From contig CM060731.1 of the NCBI GenBank assembly GCA_030704615.1, positions 52,328,001 through 52,392,000 on the forward strand: 64,000 bases of DNA, given 5' to 3'. The stretch is from Takakia lepidozioides. Lineage: Eukaryota > Plantae > Bryophyta. Positions within the stretch are counted from its first letter, which is position 1; every line of letters starts with the position of its first letter. Of the stretch, positions 2,971-64,000 are shown in pieces. Position numbers and translations under genes: made by a program. Under the pieces are notes generated by a model. That model saw nothing but the letters and a program-made list of their open reading frames with translations, did no database searches and was not told the DNA's origin.

Positions 2971-3394
2971 ACCCTTGAATTTCTTAATTCCCAATATATA
3001 CATAATATCATACATATTAAGAAAACCCTTGAATTTTTTAACTCCCAATATACATAATATTATATAATATGTAGATCCCATTCTGCCCTACTTCAAAAAC
3101 CATTCATTGTCATTTCTTGTCTTTCGGACAAAACCTGGGCCCAACCTCACCCCTCACCTTGTAGCTACCTAACCCCCTTCCATCCACGTGGATGAACCAT
3201 ACCAAGTCATCCCTATGCACAAGCACTCCAAATTTGGGGAGATTCCACTGTTTTATTTGGGATATTATAACAATTGAACAAGGTGCATTTTTCAGCAAAA
3301 TAAAAATAAAAACGGAAACGTCACCTTTGACCAAGCAAACAATCAATGTTGCAAAATTTACCGGTTGGTCTGATGGTGACGTTTCCCACCTGTG

Positions 3395-3500
3395 AGCCTA
3401 ATGGCTTATCTGAAAGGGGGTTAATTTTTCCCCCTCCTCAAGGGCCTGAATAGTGAGCACTCACTCCCAGGTTTCCTTTAAAATAAATAAAAATAAAATT
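3395..3500 (+). mobile_element. 5'-truncated SINE family 1 tail
   Basis: gggggttaatttttccccctcctcaagggcctgaat...cccaggtttcct plus an A-rich tail, matching the 3' ends at about 2880-2970 and 45260-45335. Confidence 0.65.
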
Positions 3501-18228: not shown

Positions 18229-21200
18229 CCATACAATTCCAATAATGAAACATGAAAGACTGGATGGATGCGCATACTTCGTGGGAGTTCAAGCCGAAAA
18301 TTGACCGGATTTATTTGTCGAATAATTTTGAATGGTCCCAGACGTTGATAATCCAACTTCCTTGATGGTCGCGAGGTTTGTATATCCCGTCGAAGAAGCC
18401 ACTCACGATCTCCGACCTTGAACTGGGGTTGGAGTTGACGATATTGATCTGCATACTCCTTGTATTATTTTTGAGCTTCTGCGAGGTAGAATGTAAGCTC
18501 ATTGTGAATCGTAGTAAGATGAGTAGCAAGGTTTTTTGCAGCAGGGCTTCCAACAGTCTTCATATGGAAAGGGTTTGCTCGAGGATGATGACCATAATTG
18601 GAGAAAAATGGAGTTTGCTTGGTCGAAGAATGTATAGTGTTGTTATAGGCAAACTCAGCCAATGACATAAGGTCCGTCCAATTATCTTGGTGATAATTTA
18701 TCGTATAGCGAAGATACTGCTCCAAAATCTGGTTTACGCTGACCATCAGTCTGTGGATGATTAGCTGTAGAGAGATAGATCTTAGTATCCAATATGTGAA
18801 ATAATTACCTCTAGAAATTTGATATGAACTGTGGTCCTCGATCAGATATGATGTCCTTCGGGAGTCCATGAATGCGGTAGATATTATTGAGGAAGAGTCT
18901 TGCGTCTTATTACATGGAATGAAATGTGTCATCTTTGTAAAACGATCGACAATAATAAGGGTTGAATCGGTGGTCTTGGAAATTGGAAGGTCTGTAATAA
19001 AGTCCATAAACACGGATGACCATGGACCATTGGGAATGGGTAATGGTTGCAGGAGGCCGTAAAGTCGATGTCGTGGTCCCTTCGCTCTAGCACACGTGTC
19101 GCAAGATTTTATAAATTCTTTCACGAGTTTCCACATCTGCGGCCACCAATAGTCCTTGGATATCAATTCCATTGTTTTGTTGAAGCCGAAATGTCATGCA
19201 GCCGGAAGATCATGACATGTTTGAAAAATTTGAAGTCGTGTAGGTCTTGGAAGTACATAGAAAAGTCCCTTGAAATAAAGTAAGCCATCTTTGAATTCGA
19301 AGTTCGTTTGTAACATGTGGGTTGTCTCGAGGTCGATTTAGTTGACTTCGTAGTGTCGTAGCAAATTGGTCGCTCTTCAGTGCTTCATGAATCTCCTTTA
19401 TGATCTCTACATCGTCATAGGTAGACATGGATAGCATATTCACTTGGAGATTTGCTGGTTTCAAAATGATGGATTTCTGTTGGTCAAAAGCTGCATCCCC
19501 TTCTTTTGGCGCAAGATACGATCGTCGAGAAAGAGCATCTGGTTTTCCTTGAAGATGTCCGGGACGGTAGGTAATAACAAAATCAAACCTTGCTAGTGAC
19601 ATACTCCATCTCGATTGACGTCGATTCAAAACACGAGCACTCATAAAATACTCGAGGTTTTTGTGATCGGTATAGACTGTGACCTGATGTTTAGCTCCCT
19701 CCAATAGATGACGCCACTCCTCAAAAACATCAATAATTGCTAGAAGTTCTTTGTCATGGATTTCATAATTGATCTCCGCAACGAAAAATTTGCGAGAACG
19801 AAAACCAACAGGGTGAAGTCGACCATCTGTACCGTATTAAGAGAGTACTGCGCCAAGTGCAAAGTCCGATGCATCTGCTTCCAAAAAGAATGGTTTAGAT
19901 GGGTCTGCATGTACCAGTATTGGAGCCGTTGAAATGCCTGCTTCAGCCTTTCAAATGCTTGGTCAGCCTTCTCGTTCCATACAAATTTGTCCTTTCCTGT
20001 GAGTCGTGTCAATGGTGCAGCAATTTTGGAGTAATCATTGATGAAGATTCTATAGAAATTTGCAAATCCTAGAAAACATTGTACATCTCAGACAGAAGTT
20101 GGTTTAATCCACTCGATGATGGTTTGTATTTTTTTCTGATCCATAAAGACGCCTTTGTCGGAAATAATGTAACCCAAAAATTCGACTTCAGATTGGTGGA
20201 AAAGATATTTTTCCAACTTGGCATATAGTCCTTTTTCCCTCAATTTATCAAAGACAAGACGTACATGGCAACCATGTTCTTCTTCATTCTGTGAAAATAT
20301 CAAAATGTCGTCCAAATAGATGACTACAAAGTCATCTAAAAATTCTCGAAAGATGTCATTCATCATGTGTTGAAAAATTGCTGGAGCATTTGTAAGACCG
20401 AAAGGTATAACACTGTATTCGAAATGTCCGTACCTTGTGCGAAAAGCAGTCTTCCATCCGTCTCCTTTTTTTATTTGTACAAGGTTGTAAGCTCATCTCA
20501 AGTCAATTTTGGTGAAAATCGTCGTTCGTCCCAGTTGGTCGAGAAGCCCAGAAATCAACGGCAACAGATAACGATTTTTAGTTGTGACTTTGTTGAGTCC
20601 ACGATAGTCCACACACATGCGTAACGATCCATCCTTCTTCTTCACAAATAAGATAGGTGCTCCCACGGGTGATTTCGAATGTCGAATGAAATTCTTTGAC
20701 AATTTTTTATCAATGTATTCGCATAAAACAACCAGTTCCGTCTGAGATAAATTGTAGATCGGGCCGAATGGTGGTTGAGCTCCTTCTTGCAACTCAATTG
20801 TACAATCATAAGGTCGATGTTCTGACAACATGTCTGCATTTTTCTTCTCGAAGACATCCTTGAAATCTTGATATTGAGTGGGTAATGTCGAAGTACCTTG
20901 GTTTGTGGTTTTGATTGGAGTCGCATAAAGTGCAAATGTCGCGTCTTTCTTCGCAGCTCTCATGAAGGCTCTAGCTCCAAGAAACATGGGTTAAATACCT
21001 TTGATACTTTTGCATTTTTGTCTTGTCGAAATTTTTCGTGATTGTCAGTCGATGTCAGGATTATGAAGTACAAACCAGGAAAGTCCAAGGATCACAGGAT
21101 TCGTTGGAGATTGGATGACATTGAAAACAATCTGTGATGCTTGATTTTTAAGCTTCACTTCAAGGGGTCGAGTTTCATGGTCAATATTTCCTGATGCTAA

Positions 21201-23010
21201 CGGTCGTCCATCGATGACTTCAACAGGAGCCGAGAATTTCTTCTTTACGAGCATTAAATTGTGTTGCTTCGCAAAGTCTTTGTCAATAAAACACGTTGAA
21301 GCGCCCGAGTCCAAAAGTGTTTCTACGGAGATATCTCGATTTTGCATCCTGATCTTTATTAGAACTCTGAAACAAGGTACAGGGTCTGGAGGTAGAAAAC
21401 GACATTTTTTTGGTGAGGAATTTGGGGCGTCCAGCCGCATGGTCCCGACAGTTTAATGCTATGTGATCATCTTCTCCGCAATAAAGGTATAATCCATTCG
21501 AGTGCCGTCTTTGTTTTTCTTGTGACGTCAATGGCTTGAATCGGACAGTATCAATCTGCATAGGATCATTACCGGATGTCTGATGGATCGTTGTATTTGG
21601 TGCCATAGTAGTAGCGACATGTTGCGTCGTCGACCATCCAGATCGCTTCTCTTGACGTCTTTCGAACAAACGATTATCGCATGCAATGACTTGGGTGATG
21701 AATTCGCTCAGTGTACTCACGTTTGGCATTGTCAACAATAAATCTTTTACATCCTCTTTTAGGCCACATCGAAACTGACTAATGAGACTCTTTTCATTCC
21801 AATCGAGGTCGCACGCAAGTTATCGAAATTCGAACGGAAGCTGGACGTGCTCCTGAACGCTTCAAAATTGTATAGTAAATGCGAATTTTTCTCTAATAGC
21901 GGTGCAAACCAAGATTAAGCAGTGCCTGATAGAAGGGTGCCCATGAATCCCACTTGAATACCTTTATCAGGGTAGCGTTGTGGATGTAGTCGTAGGAACA
22001 ATCGTACTTGTTGAACAAAACCGCGAAATCTTGATCTCGTTCCATCAAATTTCTCGGGCATGCTGACCTTTGGTTCCCTTGTAATCTGTTGGAGATTTGG
22101 AAGAACCGTTGCAGTAGGATTTGTTGTAGTAGGGACTCGTAAGGTTGAAGATCCATTGTTCGACTCCTTCAACTCTGAAATTTGTTGTTGCAAATTGTTG
22201 AGAGCGTTGCCAAGATCTTGAGACTGATCAGCTTATAGTTGGGCAGTAGATGTACGGAGTTCTTGCATCTGGAGCTGAAGACTCTGCAATGTCGCGACCA
22301 TTTCCGCAAATGTGCCTTCCATCTTAACTAATTAAGGAACAAACTTTAGTCTCGCCAAACTGTCAAAGACGAGAACATGACTGAACACAAACAAGAGATC
22401 AGACTAGAGGTACAAGACTAGACAAGAAGTCAAGGTCGACGTGGCCGAATACATGGTGGGTAAACATGAATCAAGATGATCTTTATAACAATGGACAAGA
22501 CTACAAGATACTGGAACTCGACTCGAATACTGGAATGCTAGAAACTGGACTGGGTACCAGATACTGGAAACTGGACTAGAGTACTGGAAGTTGGATTGGA
22601 GTACTGGGACTGGGAATAAGAGTAGCTTGAACTTGTGTTGGCGAGACTGAAGAGTGTCCAGTCTCGCCTCCTATATATACTGGCTACTAAGAAGCTTCCC
22701 TAAGAAGCTTCCCCTATGGAGGTTTATTGCTGGAGAAGTTTTCAAGATTAAACAAAGGTTTCTTGATGGAGAAGCTTCCTTAAACAAAGGAGGTATCTTG
22801 ATGGAGAAGTTTCCTCCAAATGAAGCTTCCTGAGCAGTTTCCCAAGTTACTGTTGGTAATTTGATAAACTCCGGGTAACTTGGTAAGTAATGGTAAATCA
22901 TGGTATATCATGATAAATTAAGGTAAATCATGGTAATTTTCGATAACATTGTAACTTAATAACTTCTAATATTTATTCCTGGTAAGTTCCTCTGGGCTAT
23001 GTCCATGAAA
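18229..23010 (-). mobile_element. Ty3/Gypsy chromovirus-type LTR retrotransposon, copy 1 (degenerate, 3'-truncated)
   Basis: 5' LTR 23010-22361, then PBS, gag (PEKFDGTRSRFRGF), protease (LLDSGAS), RT ([18 protein letters not shown]), RNase H (TDHKNL) and integrase (MDFITDLP; HPVFHVSLL). It has deletions and stops, and ends before the chromodomain. Confidence 0.95.
22361..23010 (-). repeat. 5' LTR of Gypsy copy 1
   Basis: Reverse-complement match to the LTR at 28691-29309, including TATA and the ggcgagactg...cagtctcgcc hairpin. Confidence 0.9.
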
Positions 23011-26000
23011 GCAGCTAACTATTTCTCTCTTCTAGCAGCTCACTTAAGCCTATCATCTCTTCTGCTTCCTTTTCCAGCATGACCCTAGTGTAGACAGGCA
23101 TAGGTAGGACTAACACAGCTTACCTCCTATCCGCTGGAGCTTGCAGAAATTCTTCTCAGTTCGCCACACAGTGACAACTGATGTATTTGTGCTTGGGCAA
23201 GAGGTAGACCGCCTCACCCAACTGATCCCAGACTTCTCGGTCAGATTTGAGCCAAAACGAGACCTTAGCAATGGAGCGAATGATGCGTTCTTTGACAATT
23301 AGGGTATGGGAAGGGTATTCCAGTCCAGTTTCCAACATTCCAGTATCCGAGTCGAGTTCCAGTATTTTGTACTCTTGTCCATTGTTATAAAGATCATCTT
23401 GATTCATGTTCACCTACCATGCATTCGGCCACGCCGACCTTGACTTCTTGTTTAGTCTTGTACCTTAGTTTGATCTCTTGTTTCTATTCTGTCATGTTCT
23501 CGTCCTTGACAGTTTGGCGAGACTAAAGTTTGTTCTTTAGTTAGTTAAGATGGAAGGCACATTTGCGGAAATGGTCACCACATTGCAGAGTCTTCAGCTC
23601 CAGATGCAAGAACTTCGTACATCTACCGCTCGATTGCAAGCTGATCAGTCTCAAGATCTTGGCAACGCTCTCCACAATTTACAACAACAAATTTCAGAGT
23701 TAAAGGAATCGAACAATGGATCTTCAACCATACAAGTCCCTACTGCAACAGCCCCTACTGCAACGGTTCATCTTCAACAGATTACGAGAGATCCAAAGAT
23801 TAGCATGCCCGAGAAATTTGATGGGACGAGATCAAGATTTCGCGGTTTTGTTCAACAAGTACGACTGTTCCTACGACTACATCCACAACGCTACCCCGAT
23901 GAAGGTATTCAAGTGGGATTCGTGGGCACCCTTCTGTCAGGCATTGCCCTATCTTGGTTTGCACCGCTATTAGAAAAACATTCGCATTTATTATACAATT
24001 TTGAAGCATTCATGTCCGAGTTCACTGCAATGTTTGGAGAAAATGATAGAGAGAGAGTTGCAGAAACAAAGATGCGAAATCTTTGACAATGAGCACGTCA
24101 TGTTTCCGTTTATGCTGCCGAATTTCGACAACTTGCGTGCGACCTCGACTGGAATGAGAAGAGCCTCATTAGTCAGTTTCGATGTGGGCTAAAAGATAAT
24201 ATAAAAAATTTGTTGCTGACAATGCCAAACGTGAGCACACTAAGTGAATTCATCACCCAAGTCATTGCATGCGATAATCGTTTGTTCGAAAGACGTCAAG
24301 AGAAGCGATCTGGATGGTCTACGACGCATCATGTCACTGCTACTACGACACCAAACACAACGATCCATCAGACATCCAGTAGTGATCCTATGCAGATTGA
24401 TGCTGTCCGATTCAAGCCATTGACGCCACAAGAAAAACAAAGACGACGCTCGAATGGATTATGCCTCTATTGCGGAGAAGAATATCACATAGCATTAAAC
24501 TGCCCCAACAAGAGAAGATTCAAAGCTCGGGGCATAACTCAAGTGTTCGATACAAGGAGGTCGGAAAACGAAGATGTCCAGTCACAGTAGGGACCATGCG
24601 GCTGGACACCACAAATTCCTTACCAAAAAAATGTCTCTTTCTACCTCCAGACCCTGCACCTTGCTTCACAGTTCCGGTTAAAATCAGAGTGCAAAATCGA
24701 GATATCACTGTAGAAGCACTTTTGGACTCAGGAACTTCAGCTTGTTTTATGGACAAAAACTTTGCGAAGCAAAACAATTTAATGCTCGTAAAGAAGAAAC
24801 TTTCGGCCCCCGTTGAAGTCATCGATGGACAACCATTAGCATCAGGAAATGTGGACCATGAAACTCGACCACTTGAAGTGAAGCTTAAAGATCAAGCATC
24901 ACATATTGTTTTCAATGTCATCCAGTCTCTAACGAATCATGTGATCCTTGGACTTCCCTGGTTCATACTTCACAATCCCGACATCGACTGGCGATCGCGA
25001 AAATTTTTTGCAAGACAAAAATGTAGAAATAGCAAAGGTATTCAACCCCTATGCCTTGGAGCTAGAGCTTTCATGAGAGCTACCAAAAAGGAGGCGACAT
25101 TTGCACTTTATGCGACTCCGATCAAGACCACAACAGACAAAGGTACTTCAACATTACCCGCTCAATATTAAGATTTCAAAGATGTCTTCGAGAAGAAAAA
25201 TGCAGTCATATTGCCAGAACATCGACCTTATGACTGTGCAATTGAGTTACAAGAAGAAGCCCAACCACCATTCGCTCCAATCTATAACTTATCATAGACG
25301 GAGTTGGCTGCATTACGTGAATACATTGATGAAAATTTGTCGAAGCACTTCATCCGACATTCAAAATCACCCGCGGGGGTGCCTATCTTGTTTGTGAAAA
25401 AGAAGGACGGATCATTACGCATGTGTGTCGACTATCGCGGTCTCAACAAAGTCACAATCAAGAATCGTTATCCGTTGCCACTGATTTCTGGGCTTCTCGA
25501 CCAGCTGGGACGAGCGAAGATTTTCACCAAAATCGACTTGAGAGGAGCTTATAACCTTGTACGGATAAAAGAAGGAGACGAATGGAAAACAACTTTTCGA
25601 ATAAAGTATGGACATTTTGAATACAGTGTTATGCCTTTCGGTCTTACAAATGCTCCAGCAATTTTCCAACATATGATGAATGACATCTTTCGAGAATTTT
25701 TAGATGACTTTGTAGTCATCTATTTGGACGACATTTTGATATTTTCACAGAATGAAGAAGAACATGGCCGCCATGTATGCCTTGTCATTGATAAATTAAG
25801 AGAAAAAAAATTATATGCCAAGTTGGAGAAATGTCTTTTCTATCAATCTGAGGTCGAATTTCTGGGCTACATTATTTCCGACAAATGCGTCTTTATGGAT
25901 CAGAAGAAAATACAGACCATCATCGAGTAGATTAAACCAACTTCGGTCCGAGATGTACAATGTTTTCTGGGCTTTGCAAATTTCTATAGAATCTTCATCA

Positions 26001-28084
26001 ATGACTACTCCAAAATTGCTGCACCATTGACACGACTCACAGGGAATGACAAATTTGTATGGGACGAGAAGGCTGACCAAGCATTTGAAAGGCTGAAGTA
26101 GGCACTTACAACGGCTCCCATACTGGTACATGCAGACCCATCTAAGCCATTCTTTTTAGAAGCAGATGCATCGGACTTTGCACTTGGCATGGTACTCTCA
26201 ATACGGTACAGATGGCCGACTCCACCCTGTTGGTTTTCGTTCTCGCAAATTTTCCACTGCGGAGATCAATTATAAAATCCATGAAAAAGAACTTCTAGCA
26301 ATTATCGATGTTTTTGAGGAGTGACGACATCTATTGGAGGGAGGTAAACATCATGTCACTGTCTATACCGATCACAAAAACCTCGAATATTTTATTAGTG
26401 CTCGTGTTTTGAATCGACGTCAAGCGAGATGGAGTATGTCACTAGCAAGGTTTGAATTTGTTATTACCTACCGTCCTGGACATCTTCAAGGAAAACCAGA
26501 TGCTCTTTCTCGACGATCGTATCTTGCGCCAAAAGAAGGGGATGCAGCTTTTGACCAACAAAAATCCATCATCCTGAAACCAGCAAATCTCCAATTGAAT
26601 ATGCTATCCATGTCCACCTATGACGATGCAGAGATCATAAAGGAGATTCAGGAAGCACTGAAGAACGACCATTTTGCTACGACACTACGAAGTCAACTAA
26701 ATCAACCTCGAGACAACCTACATATTACAAACGACTTCGAATTCAAATATGGCTTACTTTACTTCAAAGGACTTCTTTATGTTCCTCCAGGACCTACACG
26801 ACTTCGAATTCTTCAAACATGTCATGATCTTCCGGCTGCAGGACATTTCGGCTTCAACAAAACATTGGAGTTGATATCCAGGGACTATTGGTGGCCGCAG
26901 ATGTGGAAACACGTGAAAGAATTTATAAAATCTTGCGACACGTGTGCTAGAGCGAAGGGACCACGACATCGACCTTACGGCCTTCTTCAACCATTACCCA
27001 TTCCCAAGGGTCCATGGTCGTCCCTGTCTATGGACTTTATTACGGACCTTCCAATTTCCAAGACCACCGATTCAATCCTTGTTATTGTAGATCGTTTTAC
27101 GAAGATGACACATTTCATTCAATGTAATAAGACGGTTACCGGCGAGGAAACTGCAAGACTCTTCCTCAATAATATCTACCGCATTCATGGACTCCCGAAG
27201 GACATCGTATCTGATCGAGGACCATAGTTCATATCAAATTTCTGGAGGGGATTATTTCACATATTGGATACTAAGATCAACCTCTCTACAGCTAATCATC
27301 CACAGATTGATGGTCAAACCGAACGTATAAATCAGATTTTGAAGCAGTATCTTCGTTGTACGATAAATTATCACCAAGATAATTGGACGGACCTTCTGTC
27401 ATTGGCTGAGTTTGCCTACAACAACACTATACATTCTTCGACCAAGCAAACTCCATTTTTCTCCAATTATGGTCATCATCCTCGAGCAAATCATTTCCAC
27501 ATGAAAACTGTTGGAAGCCCTGCTGCAGAAAACCTTGCTACTCATCTTGCTACAATTCACTAGGAGCTTACATCTCACCTCGCAGAAGCTCAAAAACAAT
27601 ACAAAGAGTATGCAGATCAACGTCGCCAACTCCAACCCCAGTTCAAGGTCGGAGATCGTGTGTGGCTTCTTCAACGGGACATACAAACCTCGCAACCATC
27701 AAAGAAGTTGGATTATCAACGCCTGGGACCATTCAAAATTATTTGACAAATAAATCCGATCAGTTTTCGGCTTGAACTCCCACGAAGTATGCGCATCCAT
27801 CCAGTCTTTCATGTTTCACTATTGGAGTTGTATCATCCATCGAATATTCCAGAGAGAGTTTCTGTACCACCTCCACCAATGGAAGTCAATCAGGAAATTG
27901 AATATGAAGTCGACGAAGTCCTAGACTCTCGCATTAAGTATAAACGTCTTGAGTATTTTGTACATTGGAAAGGCTACGACATCAGCAAACGAACGTGTGA
28001 ATCTTCCTCCAACCTCGTCAATGCCTCTGACAAAGTCCAAGAGTTTCATCAACGATATCCAGCTAAGCCTCGAGCTACACGTCA

Positions 28085-28690: not shown

Positions 28691-29309
28691 TGTCACGGAC
28701 ATAGCCCAGAGGAACTTACCAGGAGTAAATACCAGAAGTTACCATGTTACCATGTTACCGAAAGTTACCATGATTTACCATTACTTACCAAGTTATCGAG
28801 AGTTTACCAAATTACCAAGAGTAACTTGGGAAACTACTCAGAAATCTTCATTTGGAGGAAACTTCTCCATCAAGATACCTCCTTCGTTTAAGGAAGCTTC
28901 TCCATCAAGAAACCTTTGTTTAATCTTGGAAACTTCTCCAGCAAGAAACCTCCATAGGGGAAGCTTCTTGGGGAAGCTTCTTAGTAGCCAGTATATATAG
29001 GAGGCAAGACTGGACACTCTTCAGTCTCGCCAACACAAGTTCAAGCTACTCTTGTTCCAAGTCCAGTACTCCAGTCCAGCTTCCAGTATGCAGTCTAGTT
29101 TCCAGTATCTGGTATTCCAGTCCAGTTTCCAGCATTCCAGTATCCGAGCCGAGTTCCAGTATTTTGTACTCTTGTCCATTGTTATAAAGATCATCTTGAT
29201 TCATGTTCACCTACCATGCATTCGGCCACGCCAACCTTGACTTCTTGTTTAGTCTTATACCTCTAGTCTGATCTCTTGTTTGTGTTCTGTCATGTTCTCG
29301 TCCTTGACA
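28691..29309 (+). repeat. 3' LTR of Gypsy copy 2
   Basis: TGTCACGG...CCTTGACA directly after the PPT, with TATATATA at 28992. It matches the partial 5' LTR and the LTR of copy 1. Confidence 0.93.
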
Positions 29310-30075: not shown

Positions 30076-33000
30076 ATGAAATACTACATGCTAGTGAGGG
30101 TTAATCAGCACAGGTGTAGTTGTTACTGACAATGTAAGTTCCTCAAAAGCCTGTTGACATTCAGCTGTCCATGCAAACACTGCATCTTTCTTCAGAAGCT
30201 TGCTCAATGGTGTTGCTATCTGTGCATACCGTCTGACAAATCTTCTGTAATAACTGGTTTGTCCAAGGAATCTCCTTAGACTCTTAACATTTACTGGTGG
30301 TGGAGAGGCTTTAATGGCCTCTGTCTTTCTGGGATCCACAAGAAGTCCCCTCTTACATACAATGTGTCCCAAAAGCACCCTTGAGTTCACACAGAAAGTA
30401 CATTTCTCTGGATTTAGGCCCAGACCTCTCATCCTGCATCTGGCCAAACATAACTCCAATTTATGCAAGTGCTCATTCTTAGAGCTATACACACTGAAAT
30501 CATCCAAGAACACCTACATGAAATCATCCAAATACTCATGAAAGATTCACTTATCACTCTCTGAAAGGTTACTAGTGCATTACAAAGTCCAAAATGCATG
30601 ACTTTGTATGCATAAGCACCCCAGTCTGTGATGAAAGTTGTCTTTCCCTGGTCTTCTTCTGCCACTTGCACTTGATTATAACCACTGAAGCCAACCATGA
30701 ATGAGTACATCTCATGGCCTGCCACAAAGTGTCCAATACTCTTAGCTTCCTCAAAGAATTCTGGCTCCAAATCAGCCTCTACCTTCACCATCCTCGGTTC
30801 CTCTTCAGTTCCCACATTCATTTCTCTCACCTGCTCATCAGTTGTGATTGTCCAACCAGTCACCACTTCATCCTGTAAACTCACATAGGCTGGTTCTTCT
30901 AGGATTTCCATTTCTCCCTCTCTTTCTTTATAGAATTGTGGTGGGTAACTGCTTGTTTCACCCTCAATTGGTGTCGCTGTCACTACACCACAGCAGATAC
31001 CTTTTAAACAACTTAGGCCTTCCAGCTGCATCTTTGCAACCTGCTCCCACTCTGGGTGTGCAGCGAACAGGGTAGCTTCTTGCTCCTCAACAAGTCCTCC
31101 CCTCCAGTCATACTCCCTGACCCCTCGAGGTCTTCTCGTAGCAGGTAGTCTATTAGATTTCTTAGTGGTGATTTGTATCTTGTGCATCCCATCATGCACA
31201 GTTAGTAACTGGGAATTCCAGTCATGGAATACCCTGGCCTATTTCAGCCACAGTCGACCTAGCAATAAGGAGTAAGCTTCCATGACTTCATCCATTTTCA
31301 ACACAGTTACTGTGATCTTAAAGATCATCTTTTGAATCTGTATCTTAACTCCTCTTATCAATCCCAATGGCTGTACACTTCTTTGATCTGCCATTGTTAC
31401 TGTAAATGGGGCTGGTTTCATGTTACTTAGACCAAGCTTCTGCCTTAATTGGTCTTTCATGATATTCACTCCAGAGCCTCCATCTATCAGTACATCAGTT
31501 AGTTCTGTGCTTCCAATTCTCAATTGGATTACTGGCATAGAATCACCAAAGTCCATGACTGTTTCTCGCCCTTCCGGCTTCACATTATAACTGGTCAGCT
31601 TGCTGTTCAGGTCTGTGTTCCCTGTCACATGGGCAATTCGATTGATTGCTTGATACAGCCTATGTATACAATAAGGTGCCACAGCCAATAGCTGTCCAAT
31701 GGTAATCTCCGCTTTGGTCTGGCATATTACTTCAGCCAAAGTCCCTTCATTACTCTGCATTTCCGCAGCTTCTTTCTTCCCTTCATCCTCACTCTCTTCC
31801 TCTTCTCTTTCAGAATCAGAGGAATCTGCCATAGGAATATCAGTACTCTTCTGCATTTCCCTTATGGTATCTGCCACTTCCTTGTGCAGTTCCTTCTCAT
31901 CTCTCCAAGCCTTATCATCTTCAAGCACATCACTGCCATCTTCATTATCATCACCTTCCACATCTACTGGAGGTATTATTTTGGCTTTGCTTCTGGTTAC
32001 TATCATTGTACTTACTTCTGGTACAACACATGGCCTAACCATGTGAGCTACCACCACTGGCCCCTCATTCACAGGAGCTCTCATCTCATTCTGGTGTCTG
32101 ATCCGGAATGGACAGGTTGCCTTCCGATGTCCTGATTACAATAGTAACACAGTTCTTCCCCATTAGGTCCTCGCCCTTGGTCTGTTCCGGGATTGTTTCT
32201 GTAATCCTGATTCCCTGGCTGGTAATTCCCTCTTGGATTACCTCTCCCTTCCATGCCATTGTTATAACCACCAAGCCTACCATAGTGGTCCCGATCACTG
32301 TTTCTTCTTGGTTGGGGCTGCACTTGATGCACCCTTACTTGCCTAGGTTATCTTGCTGCTGTCCTTCTGTTGTAGTAACAATTCTCAGTAGAATGGTTAT
32401 CCATTTTATAGGTAGTATAGTGTTTCTCCTTCATGTGGCATTCAGTGGTGGTATGGCCTTCATTCTGGCATTTTGCACACCAAACACCCTTCCTCCAATG
32501 TGTTGCAGCCTCTGTGGCATACTTCTTCAAGATTTCTTCTAATATTTTCTCATAGGTATCCCTCTTCAACGTTTCCTTCTTCTTACTCTTCCTCTTAAGC
32601 TCTTGCTCTTCTTCCTCATCTGACTCATCCTCAGAGTCCTCATCATCCCTTTTCTCTCTCTTGAGCATTCCCAATTGCTCAATTCTGTTCGATGTTTCAA
32701 ATGCCTCCTCCACTGTATTATGGGGTAACATATCCACTTTCTTTTGCAACTCTGGTCTTAGTCCACTCACAAACCAAGTCTTCTGTAAACCTGGTGCTGG
32801 TACAGCAGCCAGCTTTTTCATCATCAATTCCATCTTTTCCATATACTCCTCAACAATTTCATGCTTTTGCTTTAACAGTTGTAAACTTCCATACACTTCA
32901 TCCTCAGTTTTACTTGTCCTGAACCTACTTTCGGAATGCTGTATTCAAGCCATTCCAGGTTAGGAAATGATTATTAGGGAATCTTGCATACCATTCACTT

Positions 33001-34856
33001 GCTTTCTTTATCAGTGAACAAGGGAACAGTCTCATCTTGGCATCATCGCCATTCTCATTGTTCACAATACACATGTGCTCAAATTGGCTAATGTGTACAT
33101 CAGGATCCCCTTTTCCTGAATATATTGGAAAAGGTGGTTTTGCTCGTGTTGGTTGTAATGCCATTTGTGGCCATACCCCCTGCCCACTTACAGGTGCTGG
33201 CCCCCTTGCTGGTGCTGGTCCTTGAGGACCTGTGGTAGTTGTGGTGGAACTTCCACCAAGTGCTGGCCCCTGAGCACTCCCTGCTACTGGCCCCACTATA
33301 TTCTCAGTATTCCCAGCTCCAGTTGCACTACTTCCCACACTCCCTGTCCCCCCAGAGCCAGATCCAGGCTGCCCGCCTAATCCCCCTGAGCCGACACCTT
33401 CGTTGGCCTGTGATCCAAGTGCTCCACTTGATCCAGGTCCAACGGGTTGGGATGTCCTGGTTGTAGTCTCAACCTCAGCTGTTGGGTCTACTTCTTCATA
33501 CTCTTCCTCTTCCAATTTCTTCTCTCTGTTTTCATCTTCCAAGTTCTGCCCTTGGGTTTCTTCTTCTTCACTCATGTAACTCAATTGCAATGGTGTTGGA
33601 GAGTCTGAACTCTCCGTTGGCTCTGCCACATCCTCTCCTCCTTCTTCGTCTTCCGTCTCAGAAACTGGAGTTCCTGCTTTTGGTGTTCCATGCCAACTCT
33701 TATCAAAGATTTCTGCTATCACATAAACCAGTGTTGGTAACCAACGTGCTCTTCCTCTACAGGCCACCTGATAAATCTTTATCACTCCTTTCTCCAGACC
33801 CCACTCAGGATCAGCATCATGTACTCTCTTAAGAATGTTTTCTTTACAACCGTCTGGCAATTCCAAGAACCTCTGAAAGAATTGTTTGGACAATCTTTCC
33901 TTCTCAGTTCCACAGGGAATTTGATTCACATCAAATTCTTTAATTCTCCAACCACCATGATCCCACCAGATTCCTGTCACATCTGGTTGTTCATGACCCA
34001 GTTCCCCAGTATGGTCGCCAAATGTCGAGCGGCTTTTACTCACCCATCCCTTCGCTATCTGAGGTAGAAACTCCAAGATAGAAGAGTTGGATATCTCTAA
34101 GCATTCAGCCCGCTCAGAACAATCAGTCATGATCTGCAGCTAGTGAATCATGGTTGTGCTTCCTATTTGTATTCCTTCCTGCCTTCATGTTATCAATTTA
34201 CCTTACTGTGTATACTGAAGCATCAGATTGCTTCAGTATCTACTAAGTTCCAATTAATCATGCATTCATTCCATAGCTTCTCTCGTGTCTCTCTACACAA
34301 TATGTTTGTATCGATTCAGTATTGGATTAAGATTAATCATGTATCATGCTTATGCCATGGTGTCTCTATTCTATCCTACTGTATAATTTTACAGCTTGCA
34401 TGAACTAAGCCTCATTCAAGTCATCATCTCCTCTTCACTGTTTTTCGCTCTCCGTTACGTCTCTTCCTCCCCTGAACAAGTCGCCCTCCTCAAGATGTGA
34501 TCCCCTTCCTGTTGCCGCGCTCCTAATCTACCCGCAAGTTGTTCTAACCACCTAACTAACTAACTGTCACCCCTGAAGTAACACGTTCCCTCCGCAGATG
34601 TCGTTCCCACACAGCCGTTCCCTGTCAATGATAGCTGTTCCCCATGTACTGTGATAGGCTGTGTCAAGCTGTGTCGGGCTGTGACTGGCTGTGCGAAGCT
34701 GTGTCGGGCTGTGTGAAGATGTGACGGGCTGTGTAATCCCCCTAAAGCAGGCTCCTACCACCCCTAAGGCTCATGTTGGTCTCAGTCTGCGCAAAAATTA
34801 AGGGTACCCCACAGAACCCGTAAAAGCGTCTAAGTCCCAAGCAGCTCTCTAACAAC
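30076..34856 (-). mobile_element. Ty3/Gypsy retrotransposon, second family (gag, protease, partial RT; 3'-truncated)
   Basis: gag (PIYSGKGDPDVHISQFE, LFPCSLIKKASEWY, CAKCQNEGH), protease (VLIDGGSGVNIM) and RT (FSGYNQV, FGLCNA, FLDDFSV, LRRFLGQTSYYRRFV). Frameshifts and an internal deletion are present. The 5' boundary is approximate. Confidence 0.9.
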
Positions 34857-34858
34857 AC

Positions 34859-35940
34859 ATGCCCCCCATTATGACACAAGGAGTTATAACCTTACTTTAT
34901 AAAAAGGGTGATAGAACAAACATATCCAATTATCGGCCCATAACCCTCCTCAATGTAGCTTACAAGATAGTGGCGAAGGCACTGGCCCTTAGATTGCAGC
35001 CTCTCCTTCCAACGATAATTAGGCCAAATCAAACAGGGTTTATCAAGGGTAGATACATATTGGATAACCTCCTTCTAGCCTAGGAAATTCCAGACTTCGC
35101 TGCTAGAACAAACCAAGCTATTGCCCTCCTCCTTTTAGACTTTGAGAAGGCTTTCGATCGTGTTGAATGGTCATACCTGCTGGCAGCCCTGGCCAAATTG
35201 GGTTCTCTCCAATCCTTTTGCAAATGGGTCAAGATATTACTCACCGATGCATCTAGCAGAGTCTCAATCCATTTGTCAGCTTCGTTCCCTCTGCAGCGCT
35301 CAGTGAGGCAAGGGTGTCCCCTCTCACCTTTCCTGTTTCTGGTGGTAGCAGATACACTAGGCTATATGCTACAACAAAATCAGTTTATAAAGGGCCTCAA
35401 GGTCACTAACTACATTACCAGGCAGTACAATTTCTTGGTAGACTCGATGTTCATTGATGACACATTTTTAATGTTGCAAGCCACCCCGGAAAACTTGGAC
35501 CAGGCAGGGTTTACCTTGAACAAGTTTTGTGCAGCATCTGGATTCAAAGTAAACTGGAATAAGACTCTCAATTACAGGAAGAGCCCTTGTTGCTAATCAA
35601 ATTCATTCAGCTGGATTATGGTATTATGCTTCTTCCTGGCACCCGAACTCTAAACAGATTCAGGAAATCAAGCGCCTGCTTAGGAACTTTGTCTAGGGAG
35701 CCGAGACCTCATCCCAAAACAAACGACCGCTTATAGCCTGGGCTCAAATCTGTTTACCCAAAAAAAAGAGGGGGTTAGGGATACTCGATCCAGAAACACA
35801 GATTGTAGCTCTTCTTGGCAAATGGATACCCAGGTTTCTAGGGCCGGAGGGGGGATGGTGGAAATTCTTGGTCTATGACCACATTACAAAATCCTCCCCT
35901 CTCAAGACTACCCAATGGAGCCCTTCCCTACGTTGGCTCA
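34859..35940 (+). mobile_element. L1/Tx1-type LINE reverse-transcriptase fragment
   Basis: NYRPITLLN, QTGFIKGR, LDFEKAFDRVEW, RQGCPLSP and FIDDT motifs, plus an AWAQICLPK...GGLG-like region. Stops and deletions. Confidence 0.9.
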
Positions 35941-35989
35941 CTTAAGCCGAGCGGGAGTGACTTGAAAATCTTGCTAAGTCCTCGACCCC

Positions 35990-36385
35990 CTCACTGCGAC
36001 TTACGGAGCCCACAACCCAAGCTCTCTATCAATTGTCCCGTTAACAATTCAACGCGTGTCATTGTAATTTCAAAATAGTGCCATATAGGTTACAATTGAA
36101 AAAAATGTCCTTGGGGAGTCCAACCCGCAGTCGTCAACACGACTGCACATTTCATTAATATAAAATATATATTTTTTCCGATTTTTGGAAATCAGCCTAT
36201 AAATCGGCGTGAAACCCAGAGTTCACTTCTGTGACTTGTATACTCCATATTTTATGCCAACGTGGCATAAAAACGACTGCGACAACTGACAAGTCGTCAT
36301 TCACAACCTGGAGTCCCACGAGCAATCATTTTGGACAGAATCGCAACCGCAAGTCGGGTGTGAAAATTAGTTATTCCTTGTAGTG
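35990..36385 (+). mobile_element. CACTA-like right end
   Basis: Ends ttccttgTAGTG and is preceded by repeated cgactgc/agtcg motifs. Confidence 0.5.
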
Positions 36386-36730: not shown

Positions 36731-38759
36731 GGTGGGAGGGAGGGTGACGTCGATTCAACAGCTATTCCATGTCACATGAAACGTACTCTTTCCAACAGAC
36801 CTCTGTCTGATGGAGCTACTCAGGGTACAGGAACTGAGGATATTAAGAACTCGAAAACTGATAGCGAGCTATTGTCATAGCCCAATCCATGTGACTTCAA
36901 CAACATAGTCAAGGAGCAGAGAGAGGTGGACACTGGAGTCAGCAACTGTAATGTACTGGACAAAGCTTCTAAGGAGCTGGAAACCAGACTTCACAAGCCA
37001 GGAGGAGATACCTTTGACTCCCTCAATGGTTGTCCTTCAGGAGAACCAGATATGTCCCTGCAGATTTCTGCCAACCCAGTCAGAGTACGCAAGAAACCCT
37101 CAGTTCAGAGTATCAATCAGGTCTCCGTCCCTGCTTCTAATCCAGTCCGGCACAAGAAGTTCGTTGAAAAGTTATTGGCCCGCAACGACCAGAGTGGTGT
37201 GGTGCAGGAGGCCTGGTATGGAAAGCCGTCCTTGGGAAAAGTGACTTACACCCCTCTTGAGCAGCAAGTGGTGGAACTCAAGGCCAGGTACATACCCTCT
37301 TCCTAATAGCCAGAACATTCCTCTGGGACTCTCTAGCCAAGTTCATATTTGAGGAGTGTTTTATTGCCCTTTGAACTTGCAGTTACTTTAAAGAGAGAAT
37401 ATATGTTCCATATCGTTGGCCCACTTTGCAGTTTTGTGAATGACCATGGAATAAATAGACCCATGGACAAATACTGAGACAGACTGTTTCATTGGGTGAT
37501 GTAGGTACCCAAATGTGGTGCTGCTAATTGAAGTGGGCTATAAGTTTTGGTTCTTTGGAGGTGATGCAGAGACAGCCGCACATGTGCTGGGCATCTTTGC
37601 CCACTATGACCACAACTTTCTCACAGCAAGCATTCCCACTTTCAGACTTCATGTGCATGTGCGGCGCCTTGTGGAATTTGGGTATAAAGTTGGGGTTGTC
37701 AGACAAACAGAGACAACAACAATCAAAGCACACGGGGCAAACAAAACTGGGCCTTTCACCCGTAATCTCTCGGCCCTCTACACCCGGGCAACGCTTGAGG
37801 CTGTTGAGATCTAGGAGGAGAGACACAGGGAAGGGTTGGGCGCTTGAGTACCTATCTCATGTGCATTGCAGAACAGCCATTATTGCATGGCTGGAGCCCT
37901 AACAAGGCACGTGTTGGCCTGCCCGGAAGAATGGGTGAGATGGCTGCTGCTGAAGAGGGGGGGCAATTTGGGTTAAAAGGAGACAGAAAAGCAAGCTGTT
38001 TTGATACACGGTTTGGGGTTGTGGCTGTAGAGACTGCAACAGGGGATGTTATGTATGGAGATTTTAAGGACACGGTGATGCGTACTGAGCTGGAGGCACG
38101 GTTGCTGACATGTTCCCCAGCTGAGCTCCTCCTTGCAACACCTCTGGCTTCAGCAACTGAAAAAGTGGGTATACCGCGTTGCTGTTGCAATTATTCCTAC
38201 TCTTTTGTGGTTTTGTGTATAAGGGATTTGGGAGCTTGTGCAGGGCAATAAGAAGAAGTTTGTTGATGTTCTTAAGTGCATTTGTGGGTGTAGCTTTTGA
38301 TGGAATTTGCAGGGCCTGCCTCAGAGGTTCGTGTTGAACGCATGCCCACGTGACTGCTTCAAAGACGGGGGAGCTGTTGCTGAGGTGGTCGCTTTTTATG
38401 GAAGCCAGTCCAATCAAAACTCAAGTGTGGTAGGCACTGCTTCAGAGGGAGACATGTCCCCCAAAGAGGAGAAGGTGGATGAAGGCTTGCAGGTGAGCTG
38501 GGCACAATAAATCCTCTCCATGTCTTCCTCTGATATGTGCCTCCTGCCCTCCCTGCTTGCATTTTGTAACTGGATGGATGTTCTTGGGATGCAGGCAGTG
38601 ATGGCAATGCCAGACATAGTTGTGCAAGCATTGGCACTCGCTTTGCGCTACCTTAAACAGTTTGGACTCGAGAAAGTCCTATGCTTGGGGGCTTCATTTC
38701 GTCCTTTTGCTGGGCAGAATGAGATGAGCCTTTCACCAAACACTCTCCGCCAGCTTGAG
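36731..38759 (+). pseudogene. MSH3: Truncated, frameshifted copy of the 5' part of the mismatch-repair gene MSH3, with introns
   Basis: [36 protein letters not shown]...[41 protein letters not shown] and EMSLSPNTLRQLE|GT. There is a frameshift/stop at about 37812 and no downstream ATPase exons. Confidence 0.88.
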
Positions 38760-44315: not shown

Positions 44316-44875
44316 AAGGATGTTTTCTTGGAAAGATGCTAATGTCTTGCTTCATTCATTGATCTGTGTAGCTACTCAGACCATCCACCATTTCCTGATA
44401 GTGGGGTCTACCCAGCATAGGTGGGAAGTCAGCCCACAATTGCACTTGACTGAAGGGGTGATTTTTGACTGATTCTGGTGACAGTGGATGGAAATCAGAG
44501 TGCTGTCCTAATTCTGGGTTTGGGTGGTGGAGCTTCTCCAAAGCTTGAAGATGGAAGTGAATACGAATTTTAATGAGCTTGATGAGAGGGGCAGCCCTGT
44601 GCCCAAGTTTGTTCAGCATCTTAAATTTGGACATGTTTGTTTGTTTCTCGTGGTGTGGCTTTGGATGGAGCCCTTGACGAACCTGCATGAATATTGTCAA
44701 AAGCTAGCCTTAACCCACCAAGATCTAATGCCATGGTGGATGCTTGAAAGTTCATATAGTGAATGTAAGGGTATTTGGGTATGTTGTTATTGATTAATGC
44801 GGCTTGTGAAAATTGAACATTGAAATGCAGATCTGCCATTTTTCTTCCAAAAAAAAACAAAACACGGGATCTTTG

Positions 44876-44972
44876 GGAGAGTGAGAGAGGGAGAAGACTC
44901 CGGCCGAAGCCGGCATAACTAAGAGCCACTTCACCTTTCGGCTACTGCCCTCTTTCGGGGGTGGGCCCTATA
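44876..44972 (-). mobile_element. Short retroposed structured-RNA module, copy B
   Basis: The minus strand reads tatagggcccacccccgaaagagggcagtagccgaaaggtgaagtggctcttagttatgccggcttcggccggagtc plus a CT-rich tail. It is flanked by a 9/10-matching TSD, gggatct(t/c)tg. Confidence 0.75.
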
Positions 44973-45120
44973 GGGATCTCTGCATTCAACACCGTGGGGA
45001 TGACCCACCCCTTTTTTTGTGAAAAATTGAACATAGTTCTCAGAATTCGTCGCTAGTAGTGCGGAGCAACGCGAAGCCCTAGTGTGTTTGATCTTGCCAT
45101 CTATTGACGTTTGAAATGTG

Positions 45121-45335
45121 GCACATCAGCTGGTAGCTCAGCTGGTAAGTGCACATTGTGTGGCCTTGGTGGTTTGGGGTTCAAACCCGTTGCCCTGCCC
45201 ATGTGTGGGATTGTTCGTGCTTGGCGTTGATCGTGCTGTAGGTCTCCATGGCCCATAAATGGGGTTTAATTTCCCCCCCTCCTCAAGGGCCTGAATTGTG
45301 GCCTCCCAGGTTTCCTTCTATATATATATATATAT
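45121..45335 (+). mobile_element. Intact tRNA-derived SINE (family 1)
   Basis: A-box TAGCTCAGCTGG, B-box GGTTCAAACCC, a (TA)n tail and a candidate TSD AATGTG. Confidence 0.8.
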
Positions 45336-60013: not shown

Positions 60014-62310
60014 GTGCTGCCTGATCTCCCACGCCGCTCTTGTGTGCCTGGACAGCGATCACGGCAGTGACTGACAGATCTCTGCAGGTTTCTTACATTC
60101 TTGCTGAGCTGTGCTGTGGAAGAGGCTCTCATTGAAGGCCGTGCGCTTTGGGTAAAGAGGGAATTTGAGAGGAGGATAATTTGTAGTTTGTACATGGCAG
60201 AACGGGCCAGTTGCTCGTGAAAAACAAATATCTCTCAAGCGATTCGCAGCCGTGATATAAACCTAACCGAACACCACTGCCCTCATTTTCATCAGGGAAG
60301 ATTGTTTGCAGGGGGGGCAAGAGTGAAAATCTGGCAAACCGGGCAGCCGCAAACTTGTATGTTTGCATTGTCAGAAACTTGGTTTCGTTGTCCACTTCAG
60401 GAACTTGAAAGATTGACATATGGTTGCATCATGTGATGTTGAAGCTCTCACTCGGATTCGAGTCGATAACTCACGGCCAGCTACTCACGAGATAGGAATC
60501 TGGATTGTTTGCCAGGCCTGATGGACAGAACGGATGAGCCAGCCCAAGCTTTATTGCTCATTTTGTGTCTCCCTAGCGAGTGCCAAAGTGATGGAGGATA
60601 TATAACAGGGTCCTGTCGTCCCGTCTTGTCCAAAAGCGCAGCTGCAATAATAACCTGCACCCGGGTTTTGAGAAAGATGTGCCTAGAGGCTGGACTCATC
60701 TGACTATTTTGTGAGCGAACATGTACAGACATGAATAGACGACGACGGACTGGTGTCAGCCCATTGGCATGCACGCAACATTGGCACCAGTACTTGAGGC
60801 GATATTTGTTTCTTGAGCAGTGCACTTGTAACTTTTGCATTTGCCGTCATACTTCGCTTGTACTTTTGTCTCTGCCGCGAATGTGGGGTTTATTGTAAAG
60901 CCCACACTACGCCTTACATACCTGTGTTCTGACTCCGTTGTACAGAGCAGATCATTTAAGTCTTACGGGGTTGTCGCCAGCTTGTCATCTTCTCTAAATG
61001 CGCATCACCGAAGCTCATTTGCTGCTCAAATGCTGCTACCTACTGGTGTTCTTCTAATGCTGACTCATCACGCCATTCGCATGGTTTTGACTTTCGATTT
61101 ACGTAAGTTGTGCGACCATGTGTGACTATCCTGCATGTCTCCGAACCTAGTTTGTGATTACCTCCGAAACCATCACATACTCTCGGACACACACTAGCTA
61201 TTTCAATGATATCGAAATCCTGGATCTCCAACGAACAGGTGTATCAAGTATCAACATTGGGCGCCTACATTCCGGCCCCTGCATTCTGGAACTGAAAAAT
61301 CAATGGGTTTTATCAGCGCTAAACTAAAGGGCTACACATAGGCTCTTCAATGGACCGCACTTCCACAAAACACTACCTACGCATTTGTCTTCTTCATTCA
61401 AATTTAGCGCCAATAATAGATGGGAAGATCTTTGCGCCGTCCAGGATGGACGATGACATCACCACCCTGACCTCACACCAGGTCTACAGTCCAGTCCCTG
61501 CATGCACTGCACTTTTCCATCATCATATCTTCACCTTCTTGTTGTTGCATGTACAGCACTTTTTTGAGTGGGCCCAAAGCGGAAAAGGAGCTTGATGGTA
61601 GGTGCCAGACTCGAGAATCCTCTGTGCACTCCGGATATGAAGACATGCATGGATTGTGCGGGCTGCTTGCCACAGATCTCTCTCTCTACTTGTCATGCCT
61701 GACGCCTACTTACCTCCGCACTTCCCTCTCTCTCCTCCCAGTGGCCATGTCCCGTCCTCTCGTTCATCGCCGTCCGGACCCTCCTAAATAGTACTGTGCT
61801 CTATTTCCTATATTAGGAGCTTCCACGACCAATCCTTCATGCATCGCTTTTCGTGGATGAAGCAAACTATTTCTCACACCGGCCAGGGCTGAACCCAGGA
61901 CCGCCGAGCTAGGTCCGTGAAGCTCCTGAACCCTAAAATGAGGATGGAAAGTAACCAGAAGATGCAGGATTAGGAGCAACAAAGGCCATAAAATGTTGTT
62001 TTTAAAAGTCCCTCCAATTCCCTAACTTATGTGAACCATCATGTAAGGCTTCCTGTCAAGAAGAAAAGATGATGACCTGCAGCAACAGATTGGAGTGTGA
62101 CAATGAATGGTACAATAGAGGAGGATAAGAGGCGCTCATTCTACTCGGTTAGAGCCCATGGATCACACCTATACAAGGAATGGTAGTTTGTTGGGCACTA
62201 AACTGAGTGGGGTGCACTCAAAAATAGACACCACCCCAGCTCATTGTACGTTTGTAGTCACTTGAGTGCCATATTTGGACAATCGTCATCCTAGGAGAGA
62301 TATGACTCAG

Positions 62311-62370
62311 ACCAACCAACCTAACTAAGAGCCACTTCACTTTGCGGCTACACCCTGGGGGGGTGCGCTC
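62311..62370 (-). mobile_element. Structured-RNA module, degenerate copy D with a (GGTT)n tail
   Basis: The minus strand reads gagcgcacccccccagggtgtagccgcaaagtgaagtggctcttagttaggttggttgg and matches the core of copies B and C. Confidence 0.6.
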
Positions 62371-62791
62371 AAGGTAAACTAAATATCATCCAGTTGATCA
62401 ACCTAGGTGTACATGATCTCTATCTTCATATTTCAACAATTTTGTGGAAAAAAGAAGAAGGTGTCATATACATTGACAGACAATACAATGAACATTGCTC
62501 AAATCGTAAACCAAAAAATAAAGAAATTACTCTCCATATACATTTCTTGAGCATTCAAACTAAATTATACGCTAATAAAATAGTGCGAAGGGGCCGGGGC
62601 CATTGGGCTCTGCATTTACTGGTGAGAGAGTACTTAGCCGTTTCTAAGTCCCTCTCAAGGTGGCTTGCATGTGTCTGTGTTTTTATGATGGGACAATCTT
62701 CTCCCTGGTGTTTTTCGGCGCCTTAGTGACTTCAGCTTTGCTGTATCATTTCCATTCTCATAGTTGCCCCTGCACAAGCTCTTGTTCTGAC

Positions 62792-63414: not shown

Positions 63415-63695
63415 GTTCTGACGAGTCGGCTCTGTAGTAATGTATATTGTTGCAAGGTAAGTTGGACCAAAATTAGCGTCACCAACAAAGTTTTCGGTGA
63501 CTGTCGTGCATAATATCATGAATTGCTTTGAATATAATCAATAATGTTGAGAAACATTTTCCATGTTGATTCCTAACTTCAATATTTACCTATATCAATC
63601 ATCAAATTGTCAATAAAATAAAATATCCAAGAGGTATGGACTTTTGAATACGACAACTGTGGACTGTCACCGCTGCAAATGAAAATACATGGACT

Positions 63696-63786
63696 TAATA
63701 GGGCCCACCCCCGAAAGGGGCAGTAGCCGCAAGGCGAAGTGGCTCTTAGTTACGCCGACTACAAGCCGGAGTCATCTCTCCCTCCC
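63696..63786 (+). mobile_element. Short retroposed structured-RNA module, copy C
   Basis: taatagggcccacccccgaaaggggcagtagccgcaaggcgaagtggctcttagttacgccg...ccggagtcatctctccctccc, flanked by a perfect 10-bp TSD TACATGGACT. Confidence 0.8.
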
Positions 63787-64000
63787 TACATGGACTCAAA
63801 ATAAGCCCTTGTGCATTTGGTGTATTGTTTTGCTCTTTTGAGGTAAGAGGATCAATTTAGAGAACACTCTAGATTTCAATTTAAAATGACAATATCAGCT
63901 GTCATTTACTACTTATGGACTAATATGAGTGTTATATATAGGTGGATTTGTTCTAGTTTAGTACATCTTGTATTTTGGGCTTTTGAGGTGTTATATTTTA

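Follow-up and report, generated by a model that had tools for sequence, protein, structure and literature searches.

The locus at 44873-44972 of the DNA analysed here (the whole stretch of 64,000 nucleotides from Takakia lepidozioides, hereafter the window) raises a question: what is an element that consists of a folded module and a simple-repeat tail, how is it mobilised, and what makes its copies begin at nearly the same place? A preliminary description had put four copies of the module in the window (about 2680-2760, 44876-44972 and 62311-62370 on the minus strand and 63696-63786 on the plus strand), and all four are present there. The elements that carry them are called c02, c44, c62 and c63 below and are listed in Table 1 with the other features of the window and with the anatomy of c44.

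Module copies and their predicted fold

c44 is 100 nt long and runs on the minus strand from 44972 down to 44873, with a 73-nt folded module that ends at 44896. By BLAST, c44 and c63 are 87.5% identical across 88 nt (E 1e-24), the core of c62 is 93% identical across 30 nt, and the sequence likeness of c02 to the other copies comes down to short exact words. c02 is SINE A, in which the module (2681-2762) follows immediately on a head with an A-box-like and a B-box-like motif and is itself followed by a U-rich tail (2661-2680). The 3' tails are CU-rich in c44, c63 and c62 and U-rich in c02 and in the copy at 13167-13258; upstream of c62 there is no ORF and no LINE remnant. Briefly, a covariance model was built from c44, c63, c62 and c02 and run unfiltered over the 64-kb window. 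It recovers its four source copies at 62-100 bits, which is so by construction, and it adds a fifth, decayed copy at 13167-13245. Two weak model matches (22764-22841 and 28832-28907) were rejected, being an inverted pair of another repeat and not the module. This pair, near-identical and GGAGAAG-rich (the first on the plus and the second on the minus strand), flanks the Gypsy body at 23.5-27.2 kb.

Table 1. Positions, in the window, of the module copies, of the parts of c44 and of the retrotransposon remnants.
Feature	Position	Strand	Basis or note
Mini-retroposon c44	44873-44972	-	sequence; best covariance-model match, 100 bits; empty-site joints in other host-repeat copies
Mini-retroposon c63: leader UAAUA, module, CU-rich tail	63696-63787	+	sequence; BLAST; 90.6 bits
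c62, decayed headless copy, loop-E motif damaged	62292-62381	-	sequence; 61.7 bits
c02 = SINE A, 183 nt: tRNA-like head, module, U-rich tail	2661-2843	-	sequence; 72.3 bits
Old AT-decayed fifth copy, core GUAGCCGAAUGGUGAA, T13 tail, apparently headless	13167-13258	+	25.7 bits, E 5e-5
c44: TSD AGATCCC, 5' copy	44973-44979	-	sequence; joints with 5-7 letters fitting both sides
c44: leader UAUA, 4 nt	44969-44972	-	sequence
c44: P1, GGGCC with GGCUC	44964-44968 with 44923-44927	-	standard pairs
c44: three-way junction (whole)	44923-44968	-	standard pairs in c44, c63, c02
c44: junction CAC	44961-44963	-	sequence
c44: P2, CCCC-GAAA-G(A)GGG	44948-44960	-	standard pairs
c44: P3 arm, C-AGUA-GCC-GAAA-GGU-GAA-G, loop-E (sarcin-ricin type) motif	44929-44947	-	sequence
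c44: conserved linker UUAGUUAY (UUAGUUAU)	44915-44922; G at 44914 also unpaired	-	sequence
c44: P4 hairpin CCGGC-UUCG-GCCGG	44900-44913	-	sequence, pairing
c44: AGUC after P4	44896-44899	-	sequence
c44: CU-rich tail, 23 nt	44873-44895	-	sequence
c44: TSD AGATCCC, 3' copy	44866-44872	-	sequence; same joints
Decayed L1-type LINE RT fragment	34853-36100	+	motifs YRPITLLN, RQGCPLSPFLF, FIDD
Gypsy-type LTR retrotransposon body, stop-broken	18465-21738	-	protease, RT, RNase H, integrase H2C2
Gypsy-type LTR retrotransposon body, stop-broken	23550-27227	+	protease, RT, RNase H, integrase H2C2
Gypsy-type LTR retrotransposon body, stop-broken	30429-34130	-	protease, RT, RNase H, integrase H2C2

The AGUA/GAA motif, the GNRA loops and the UUCG loop are all found as first described. 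When the copies are read with the structure in mind, c44, c63 and c02 have standard pairs at all proposed positions; the third hairpin of c63 is degenerate. The claim that letter changes between the copies mostly keep pairing also holds, as P1, P2 and P4 are fully paired in c02 with different letters: P1 reads GC GU GC CG CG in the headless type and GC GC UA GC UA CG in the SINE type, P2 reads CG four times in the headless type and CG CG UA UA UG CG in the SINE type, and P4 of c02 carries other stem letters under an identical UUCG cap. CA, CAGUA and GAA, which are unpaired, do not vary. The loop-E pattern C-AGUA-G / Y-GAA-G is found in c44, c63 and c02 and is damaged in c62; judging from the letters, this arm would adopt the loop-E conformation in three dimensions.

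To look beyond the window, contigs of four public runs from the same organism or sample type were compared with 44800-45050 (251 bases). Across these contigs the P3 tetraloop shows GNRA-compatible variants only: its N position is C in 75%, U in 21% and A in 4%, its third position is A or G (10%), and its fourth position has no listed variant. The P3 pair at 44933 is G-U in 38% and G-C in 62%. All other variants listed for the contigs are CpG-type transitions, which methylated repeats would be expected to show.

A MAFFT alignment of four sequences is 90% paired, a value reached by 12 of 500 shuffles, and its covariation score is reached by 46 of 500, figures to be read with the reservation that four or five sequences are too few for robust covariation statistics. 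MFE folding gives z-scores from -0.25 to -2.3, with no significant excess of stability, and the junction does not stand out in it. From the MAFFT alignment, RNAalifold prefers a P1 lengthened by a CACC/GGUG extension. We rejected this alternative: the majority GGCG variant would break the extension yet keep the P3 G-C pair, and the three-way junction is therefore favoured. We consider the junction plausible and supported by two lineages, though not proven.

The fold was also compared with known RNA families. Rfam gave 0 matches over the whole 64-kb window at gathering thresholds; with E up to 10, the matches for 44700-45150 were rsmX and NPPA-AS1, both noise, and those around c02 were noise as well. 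There was no match to a ribozyme family, an xrRNA, tRNA, 5S, SRP/7SL or snRNA in these searches, and ARAGORN reported no tRNA, SINE heads included. The early remark that the module does not fit the ribozyme patterns compared with it by eye was borne out by cmscan, which gave no match to hammerhead, HDV-like, twister, twister-sister, pistol, hatchet, hairpin or VS. Three further candidates were tried by eye and put aside: a hammerhead-like permutation of the junction has too short a core, an HDV-like nesting would have no P1' after P3, and Pol III A and B boxes are at the wrong position.

Insertion, abundance and proposed mobilisation

Target-site duplications of about 10 bp had been claimed for two copies; the duplications do exist, but their lengths are 7, 9 and 10 bp. 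They read AGATCCC for c44 (7 bp), ACATGGACT for c63 (9 bp; 63687-63695 / 63788-63796) and ATCRTCAYGA for c02 (10 bp; 2844-2853 / 2651-2660), where the two sides differ by CpG-type transitions only. For c62 the TSD is tentative, GGATGA(T/CG)ATT (62382-62391 / 62281-62291). Copies of the host repeat other than the one with c44 have joints that lead from 44865/6 to 44973/4, skipping 107 nt with 5-7 letters shared, and 14 contigs pass from 44872 directly into the window sequence after 44979; together they give a clean empty site with TSD for c44. The 3' loose ends of the contigs are scattered over 44883-44891, as would be expected from a repeat tail of variable length.

The element is abundant. 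The 251-base stretch, which comprises the module and its high-copy flanks, is matched at 80% identity or more by 2,344 contigs of the largest DNA run (94 at 99% or more, 538 at 95-99% and 1,094 at 90-95%). An independent plant-metagenome run yields 140 matching contigs, and two probable RNA runs, their RNA nature being guessed by the tool, yield 56 and 59. Over the core, the summed word depth exceeds that of single-copy contigs several thousand-fold; by the tool's own warning summed word depth is not copy number, and we take it only as an order of thousands.

Two side observations concern the surroundings of c44 and its transcription. The host of c44 (44800-44872 and 44973-45040) is itself a high-copy short repeat, with a summed contig depth of up to ~98k, an internal inverted repeat (TTGAATGCAGAGATC / GATCTGCATTTCAA), bounding direct repeats (ATGTTCAATTTT(T)CACAA) and, as joints show, variant internal deletions in many contigs. 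In the probable RNA runs, C>U at 44912 reaches 30-39% and G>A at 44939 reaches 21-23%, versus 4-5% in the DNA run; if the guess at the RNA nature of these runs is right, transcribed copies may represent older or different subfamilies than the genomic majority.

With TSDs, a simple-repeat tail, an empty site and apparently thousands of copies, the earlier view of a retroposed, promoter-less element stands. The element is probably a LINE-mobilised non-autonomous retroposon, in keeping with its duplicated target sites, the empty site and the variable tail. It is not headed in the manner of a canonical SINE, in that c44, c63 and c62 carry only 4-10 nt before the fold. The mini-retroposon is real, abundant and unusually minimal, and it probably falls among the LINE-tail-dependent non-autonomous elements.

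If the module is a tail recognised by a LINE reverse transcriptase, as had been proposed, the same fold may be expected behind other heads, and c02, a tRNA-headed SINE, does carry it as its 3' part. The c02 head is tRNA-like by eye (A- and B-box-like motifs), and neither ARAGORN nor Rfam reports a tRNA there. SINE A (c02) sits inside a copy of another SINE family, SINE B, which occurs on the plus strand at 45131-45320, at 2556-2640 plus 2861-2945 (the copy split by the SINE A insertion) and at about 3340-3499. The head of SINE B is clearly tRNA-like (GGTAGCTCAGCTGGTAAG ... GGTTCAAACC). Its 3' module is a different one, with a GGGGGTTAATTTTCCCCCC hairpin, then CAAGGGCCTGAATTGTGG ... CCCAGGTTTCCTT, and it ends in (AT)n or A-rich repeats. 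Since the 3' modules of SINE A and SINE B differ, at least two tail types are used in this genome.

No LINE ending in the module was found in the window, either by motif scan or by phmmer of L1-type proteins against the six-frame window. The one LINE piece that these scans detected is an L1-like RT fragment (Table 1). Its closest relatives are at most 52% identical and carry APE, RT and zf-RVT domains, which makes the fragment L1-type and not the partner LINE; no module lies near its end. The fragment abuts a Gypsy element, and a MutS-like gene fragment follows at about 37500-38250. Viral contigs and two metagenome pattern scans gave no relatives of the module, and the single match (L001) was dismissed as chance, having 9 bits with the model and lacking P1 and P2. 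The ORF that spans c63 gave no match in a word search, and an exact protein look-up of a Gypsy ORF of the window returned no record. For the Gypsy integrase ORF, the collection searched holds no public protein closer than 74% identity, and hence the genome of this organism is effectively absent from the collections searched.

We put at roughly 70% the probability that the element is a promoter-less non-autonomous retroposon that has no parts other than a simple-repeat tail and the structured 3' recognition module from a stringent-type LINE/SINE system. The module would then presumably serve as the handle for the reverse transcriptase, with a LINE as partner. The RT of this putative partner would bind the folded module (three-way junction, loop-E arm and capped hairpins), prime on the CU-rich tail at the nicked target and copy the RNA to its 5' end, and the outcome would be insertions of ~90-100 bp with TSDs of 7-10 bp. 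To our knowledge, the recognition of RNA by stringent LINE RTs and the birth of SINEs are no more than partly understood, and almost nothing is known of them for plants. A unit of ~100 nt that is about the recognition module alone would mark the minimal sequence sufficient for mobilisation, and the mini-retroposon offers a small and well-defined target for structural and biochemical work.

The common 5' end

The 5' end had been described as fixed at the base of the outer stem. The first letters are UAUAGGGCC in c44 and UAAUAGGGCC in c63, and these two copies do start within 1-2 nt of each other; the starts, however, lie 4-5 nt upstream of P1 and not at its base, and the 5' end of c62 is about 10 nt before P1. 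Among the best-supported loose ends listed for the contigs, which cannot show RNA ends, 82 contigs of the largest run diverge exactly beyond 44972 into heterogeneous sequence (agreement 0.38), and in the plant-metagenome run divergence falls at 44971 in 14 contigs and at 44972 in 9. Heterogeneous sequence beyond 44972 means independent flanks and not a common LINE body. The summed depth drops from 114k to 19k across the 44972 boundary, and the leader and the 5' half of the module have no variant that reaches 10% among the matching contigs. The common 5' end is well supported but unquantified, and it is not absolute, as c62 shows. Please note that no consistent pairing between leader and linker was seen by eye in c44, c63 and c02. 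Processing by RNase P/Z was considered and rejected, given a distance of 4-5 nt from the start of the copies to the stem and of about 8 nt from the end of the c02 head to the stem.

With a boundary defined to within 1-2 nt and placed a few nucleotides before the stem, we tentatively favour a cause at the RNA level, i.e., trimming to the compact junction. A putative discrete tail RNA would arise from LINE, SINE or read-through transcripts and be trimmed down to the compact junction, either where a 5'-to-3' exonuclease stalls or where an endonuclease cuts, a few nt ahead of P1, and the trimmed tail RNA would then be copied to its end. Most copies would in this case be dead-on-arrival by-products and not a self-sustaining lineage. 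If the 5' end does reflect a decay-resistant or processed RNA, RNA-decay pathways and retrotransposition would be connected in a new way.

The end could instead be set by the reverse transcriptase, if a LINE RT anchored on the module drops off or switches template after copying its own binding site; the copies would then be LINEs or SINEs with extreme 5' truncation, cut short just upstream of the junction. LINE copies are as a rule 5'-truncated (PMC3747384), and some scatter is indeed seen, with c62 ending ~10 nt upstream and the metagenome contigs split between 44971 and 44972. Against an end set by the RT stand the 82 contigs of the largest run that diverge at a single position, 44972, with no other 5' position among the best-supported loose ends, and a leader UAUA that has no variant at 10% or more among the matching contigs; moreover, once the junction has been unwound, nothing in the structure would halt an RT that travels 3' to 5'. 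We regard an end set by the RT as rather unlikely.

Another candidate is a self-transcribed small-RNA gene or novel SINE with a promoter inside the module, the 5' end being the transcription start. This would account for a precise 5' end and for many near-consensus copies (632 of the 2,344 contigs are at least 95% like c44), and GGCGAAGUGG resembles a Pol III A box at 10 of 11 positions by eye, with GCUUCGGCCGG loosely B-box-like. The A-box-like motif, however, is at about +37, a long way from the +8 to +20 where A boxes usually lie, c63 does not have the B-box match, itself a poor one, and neither ARAGORN nor Rfam finds similarity to tRNA, 5S, 7SL or snRNA. In the probable RNA runs 73% of the matching material continues into unrelated sequence, which indicates that the module lies within longer transcripts. 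A promoter inside the module seems very unlikely to us.

Trimming at the RNA level, the reading we prefer, would take a stronger form if the junction also defined its own RNA 5' end, either as a new class of retrotransposon-borne xrRNA (an exonuclease block) or through self-cleavage; we consider this form improbable. The junction required of a class 1 xrRNA is present, but the loops are GNRA tetraloops and Rfam gives no match. Were a self-defined 5' end true, the decay of any carrier transcript would leave a stable, retrotransposition-competent tail RNA, and this RNA would be the source of headless copies and, via template switching at its 5' end, of new SINEs. Within the searchable literature used here, we found no paper linking xrRNAs to retrotransposons.

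As for catalysis by the module itself, a self-cleaving ribozyme of an undescribed class would cut a few nt upstream of the outer stem and release the tail RNA. HDV-like ribozymes in R2 define LINE RNA ends, so that such a role has a precedent, and the fixed 5' end does lie near a compact conserved junction with invariant CA, CAGUA and GAA. Against it, no Rfam ribozyme match appears even at E up to 10, and AGUA/GAA and GNRA loops are ordinary protein- and RNA-docking motifs that need not be catalytic. Because the module stands directly behind the tRNA-like head, efficient cleavage would also sever the head of SINE A from its tail and block propagation of the SINE. We think a ribozyme highly improbable.

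Comparison with known systems

Two structured RNAs resemble the module in outline. Flavivirus and plant-virus xrRNAs have, as here, a compact three-way junction in a 3' region, and the stable RNA would begin a few nt ahead of the outer stem, as the copies here do; class 1 xrRNAs depend on a pseudoknot between a loop and downstream sequence, which the GNRA tetraloops here cannot form. Eukaryotic 5S rRNA shares an outer stem, a 5' hairpin arm and a 3' arm with an AGUA/GAA loop E. The module is about half the size of 5S rRNA and has no 5S match by cmscan at E up to 10, and the resemblance is one of motif and topology only.

Among mobile elements, R2 SIDEs and other internally deleted LINE derivatives are promoter-less and short and keep the 3' UTR needed by the RT. 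SIDEs also keep a 5' HDV-like ribozyme and depend on co-transcription with rRNA. Unlike them, the element described here has neither a ribozyme match in Rfam nor a 5' LINE segment.

A second comparison is with the Chlamydomonas elements SINEX-1/2/4_CR, in which a head of unknown origin precedes a RandI/Dualen LINE tail with (ATT)n or (CTTT)n at its end, and with the SINE-like elements of Entamoeba, which carry R4/RLE LINE tails; in both, the tail comes from a LINE with a restriction-like endonuclease (PMC3747384). They are, like the element here, non-autonomous and lack a recognisable Pol III head, and they end in a pyrimidine-rich simple repeat. Compared by description only, they have a body of unknown origin before the tail, whereas here 4-5 nt precede the fold, and their hosts differ from the land-plant host here. 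The 2013 list holds, for land plants, RTE and L1 tail pairs only (PMC3747384), and tail-sharing of the kind proposed here would extend beyond those pairs.

A further likeness is with the stringent systems. Stringent recognition of the 3' tail is established for several LINEs, and the 3' UTRs of eel UnaL2/UnaSINE1, zebrafish ZfL2, silkworm SART1 and R2 combine, as here, a conserved folded RNA with a 3' simple-repeat tail (PMC3747384). Stringent LINE/SINE tails of the UnaL2 type also share with our element a fold common to a tRNA-headed SINE and the making of TSDs (PMC3747384). They differ in the handle, which is a single stem-loop in the stringent LINE/SINE tails, whereas here it comprises a three-way junction, a loop-E arm and an extra UUCG hairpin (~75 nt). 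Unlike those tails, the module here also circulates alone, without a head or a LINE body and with a common 5' end.
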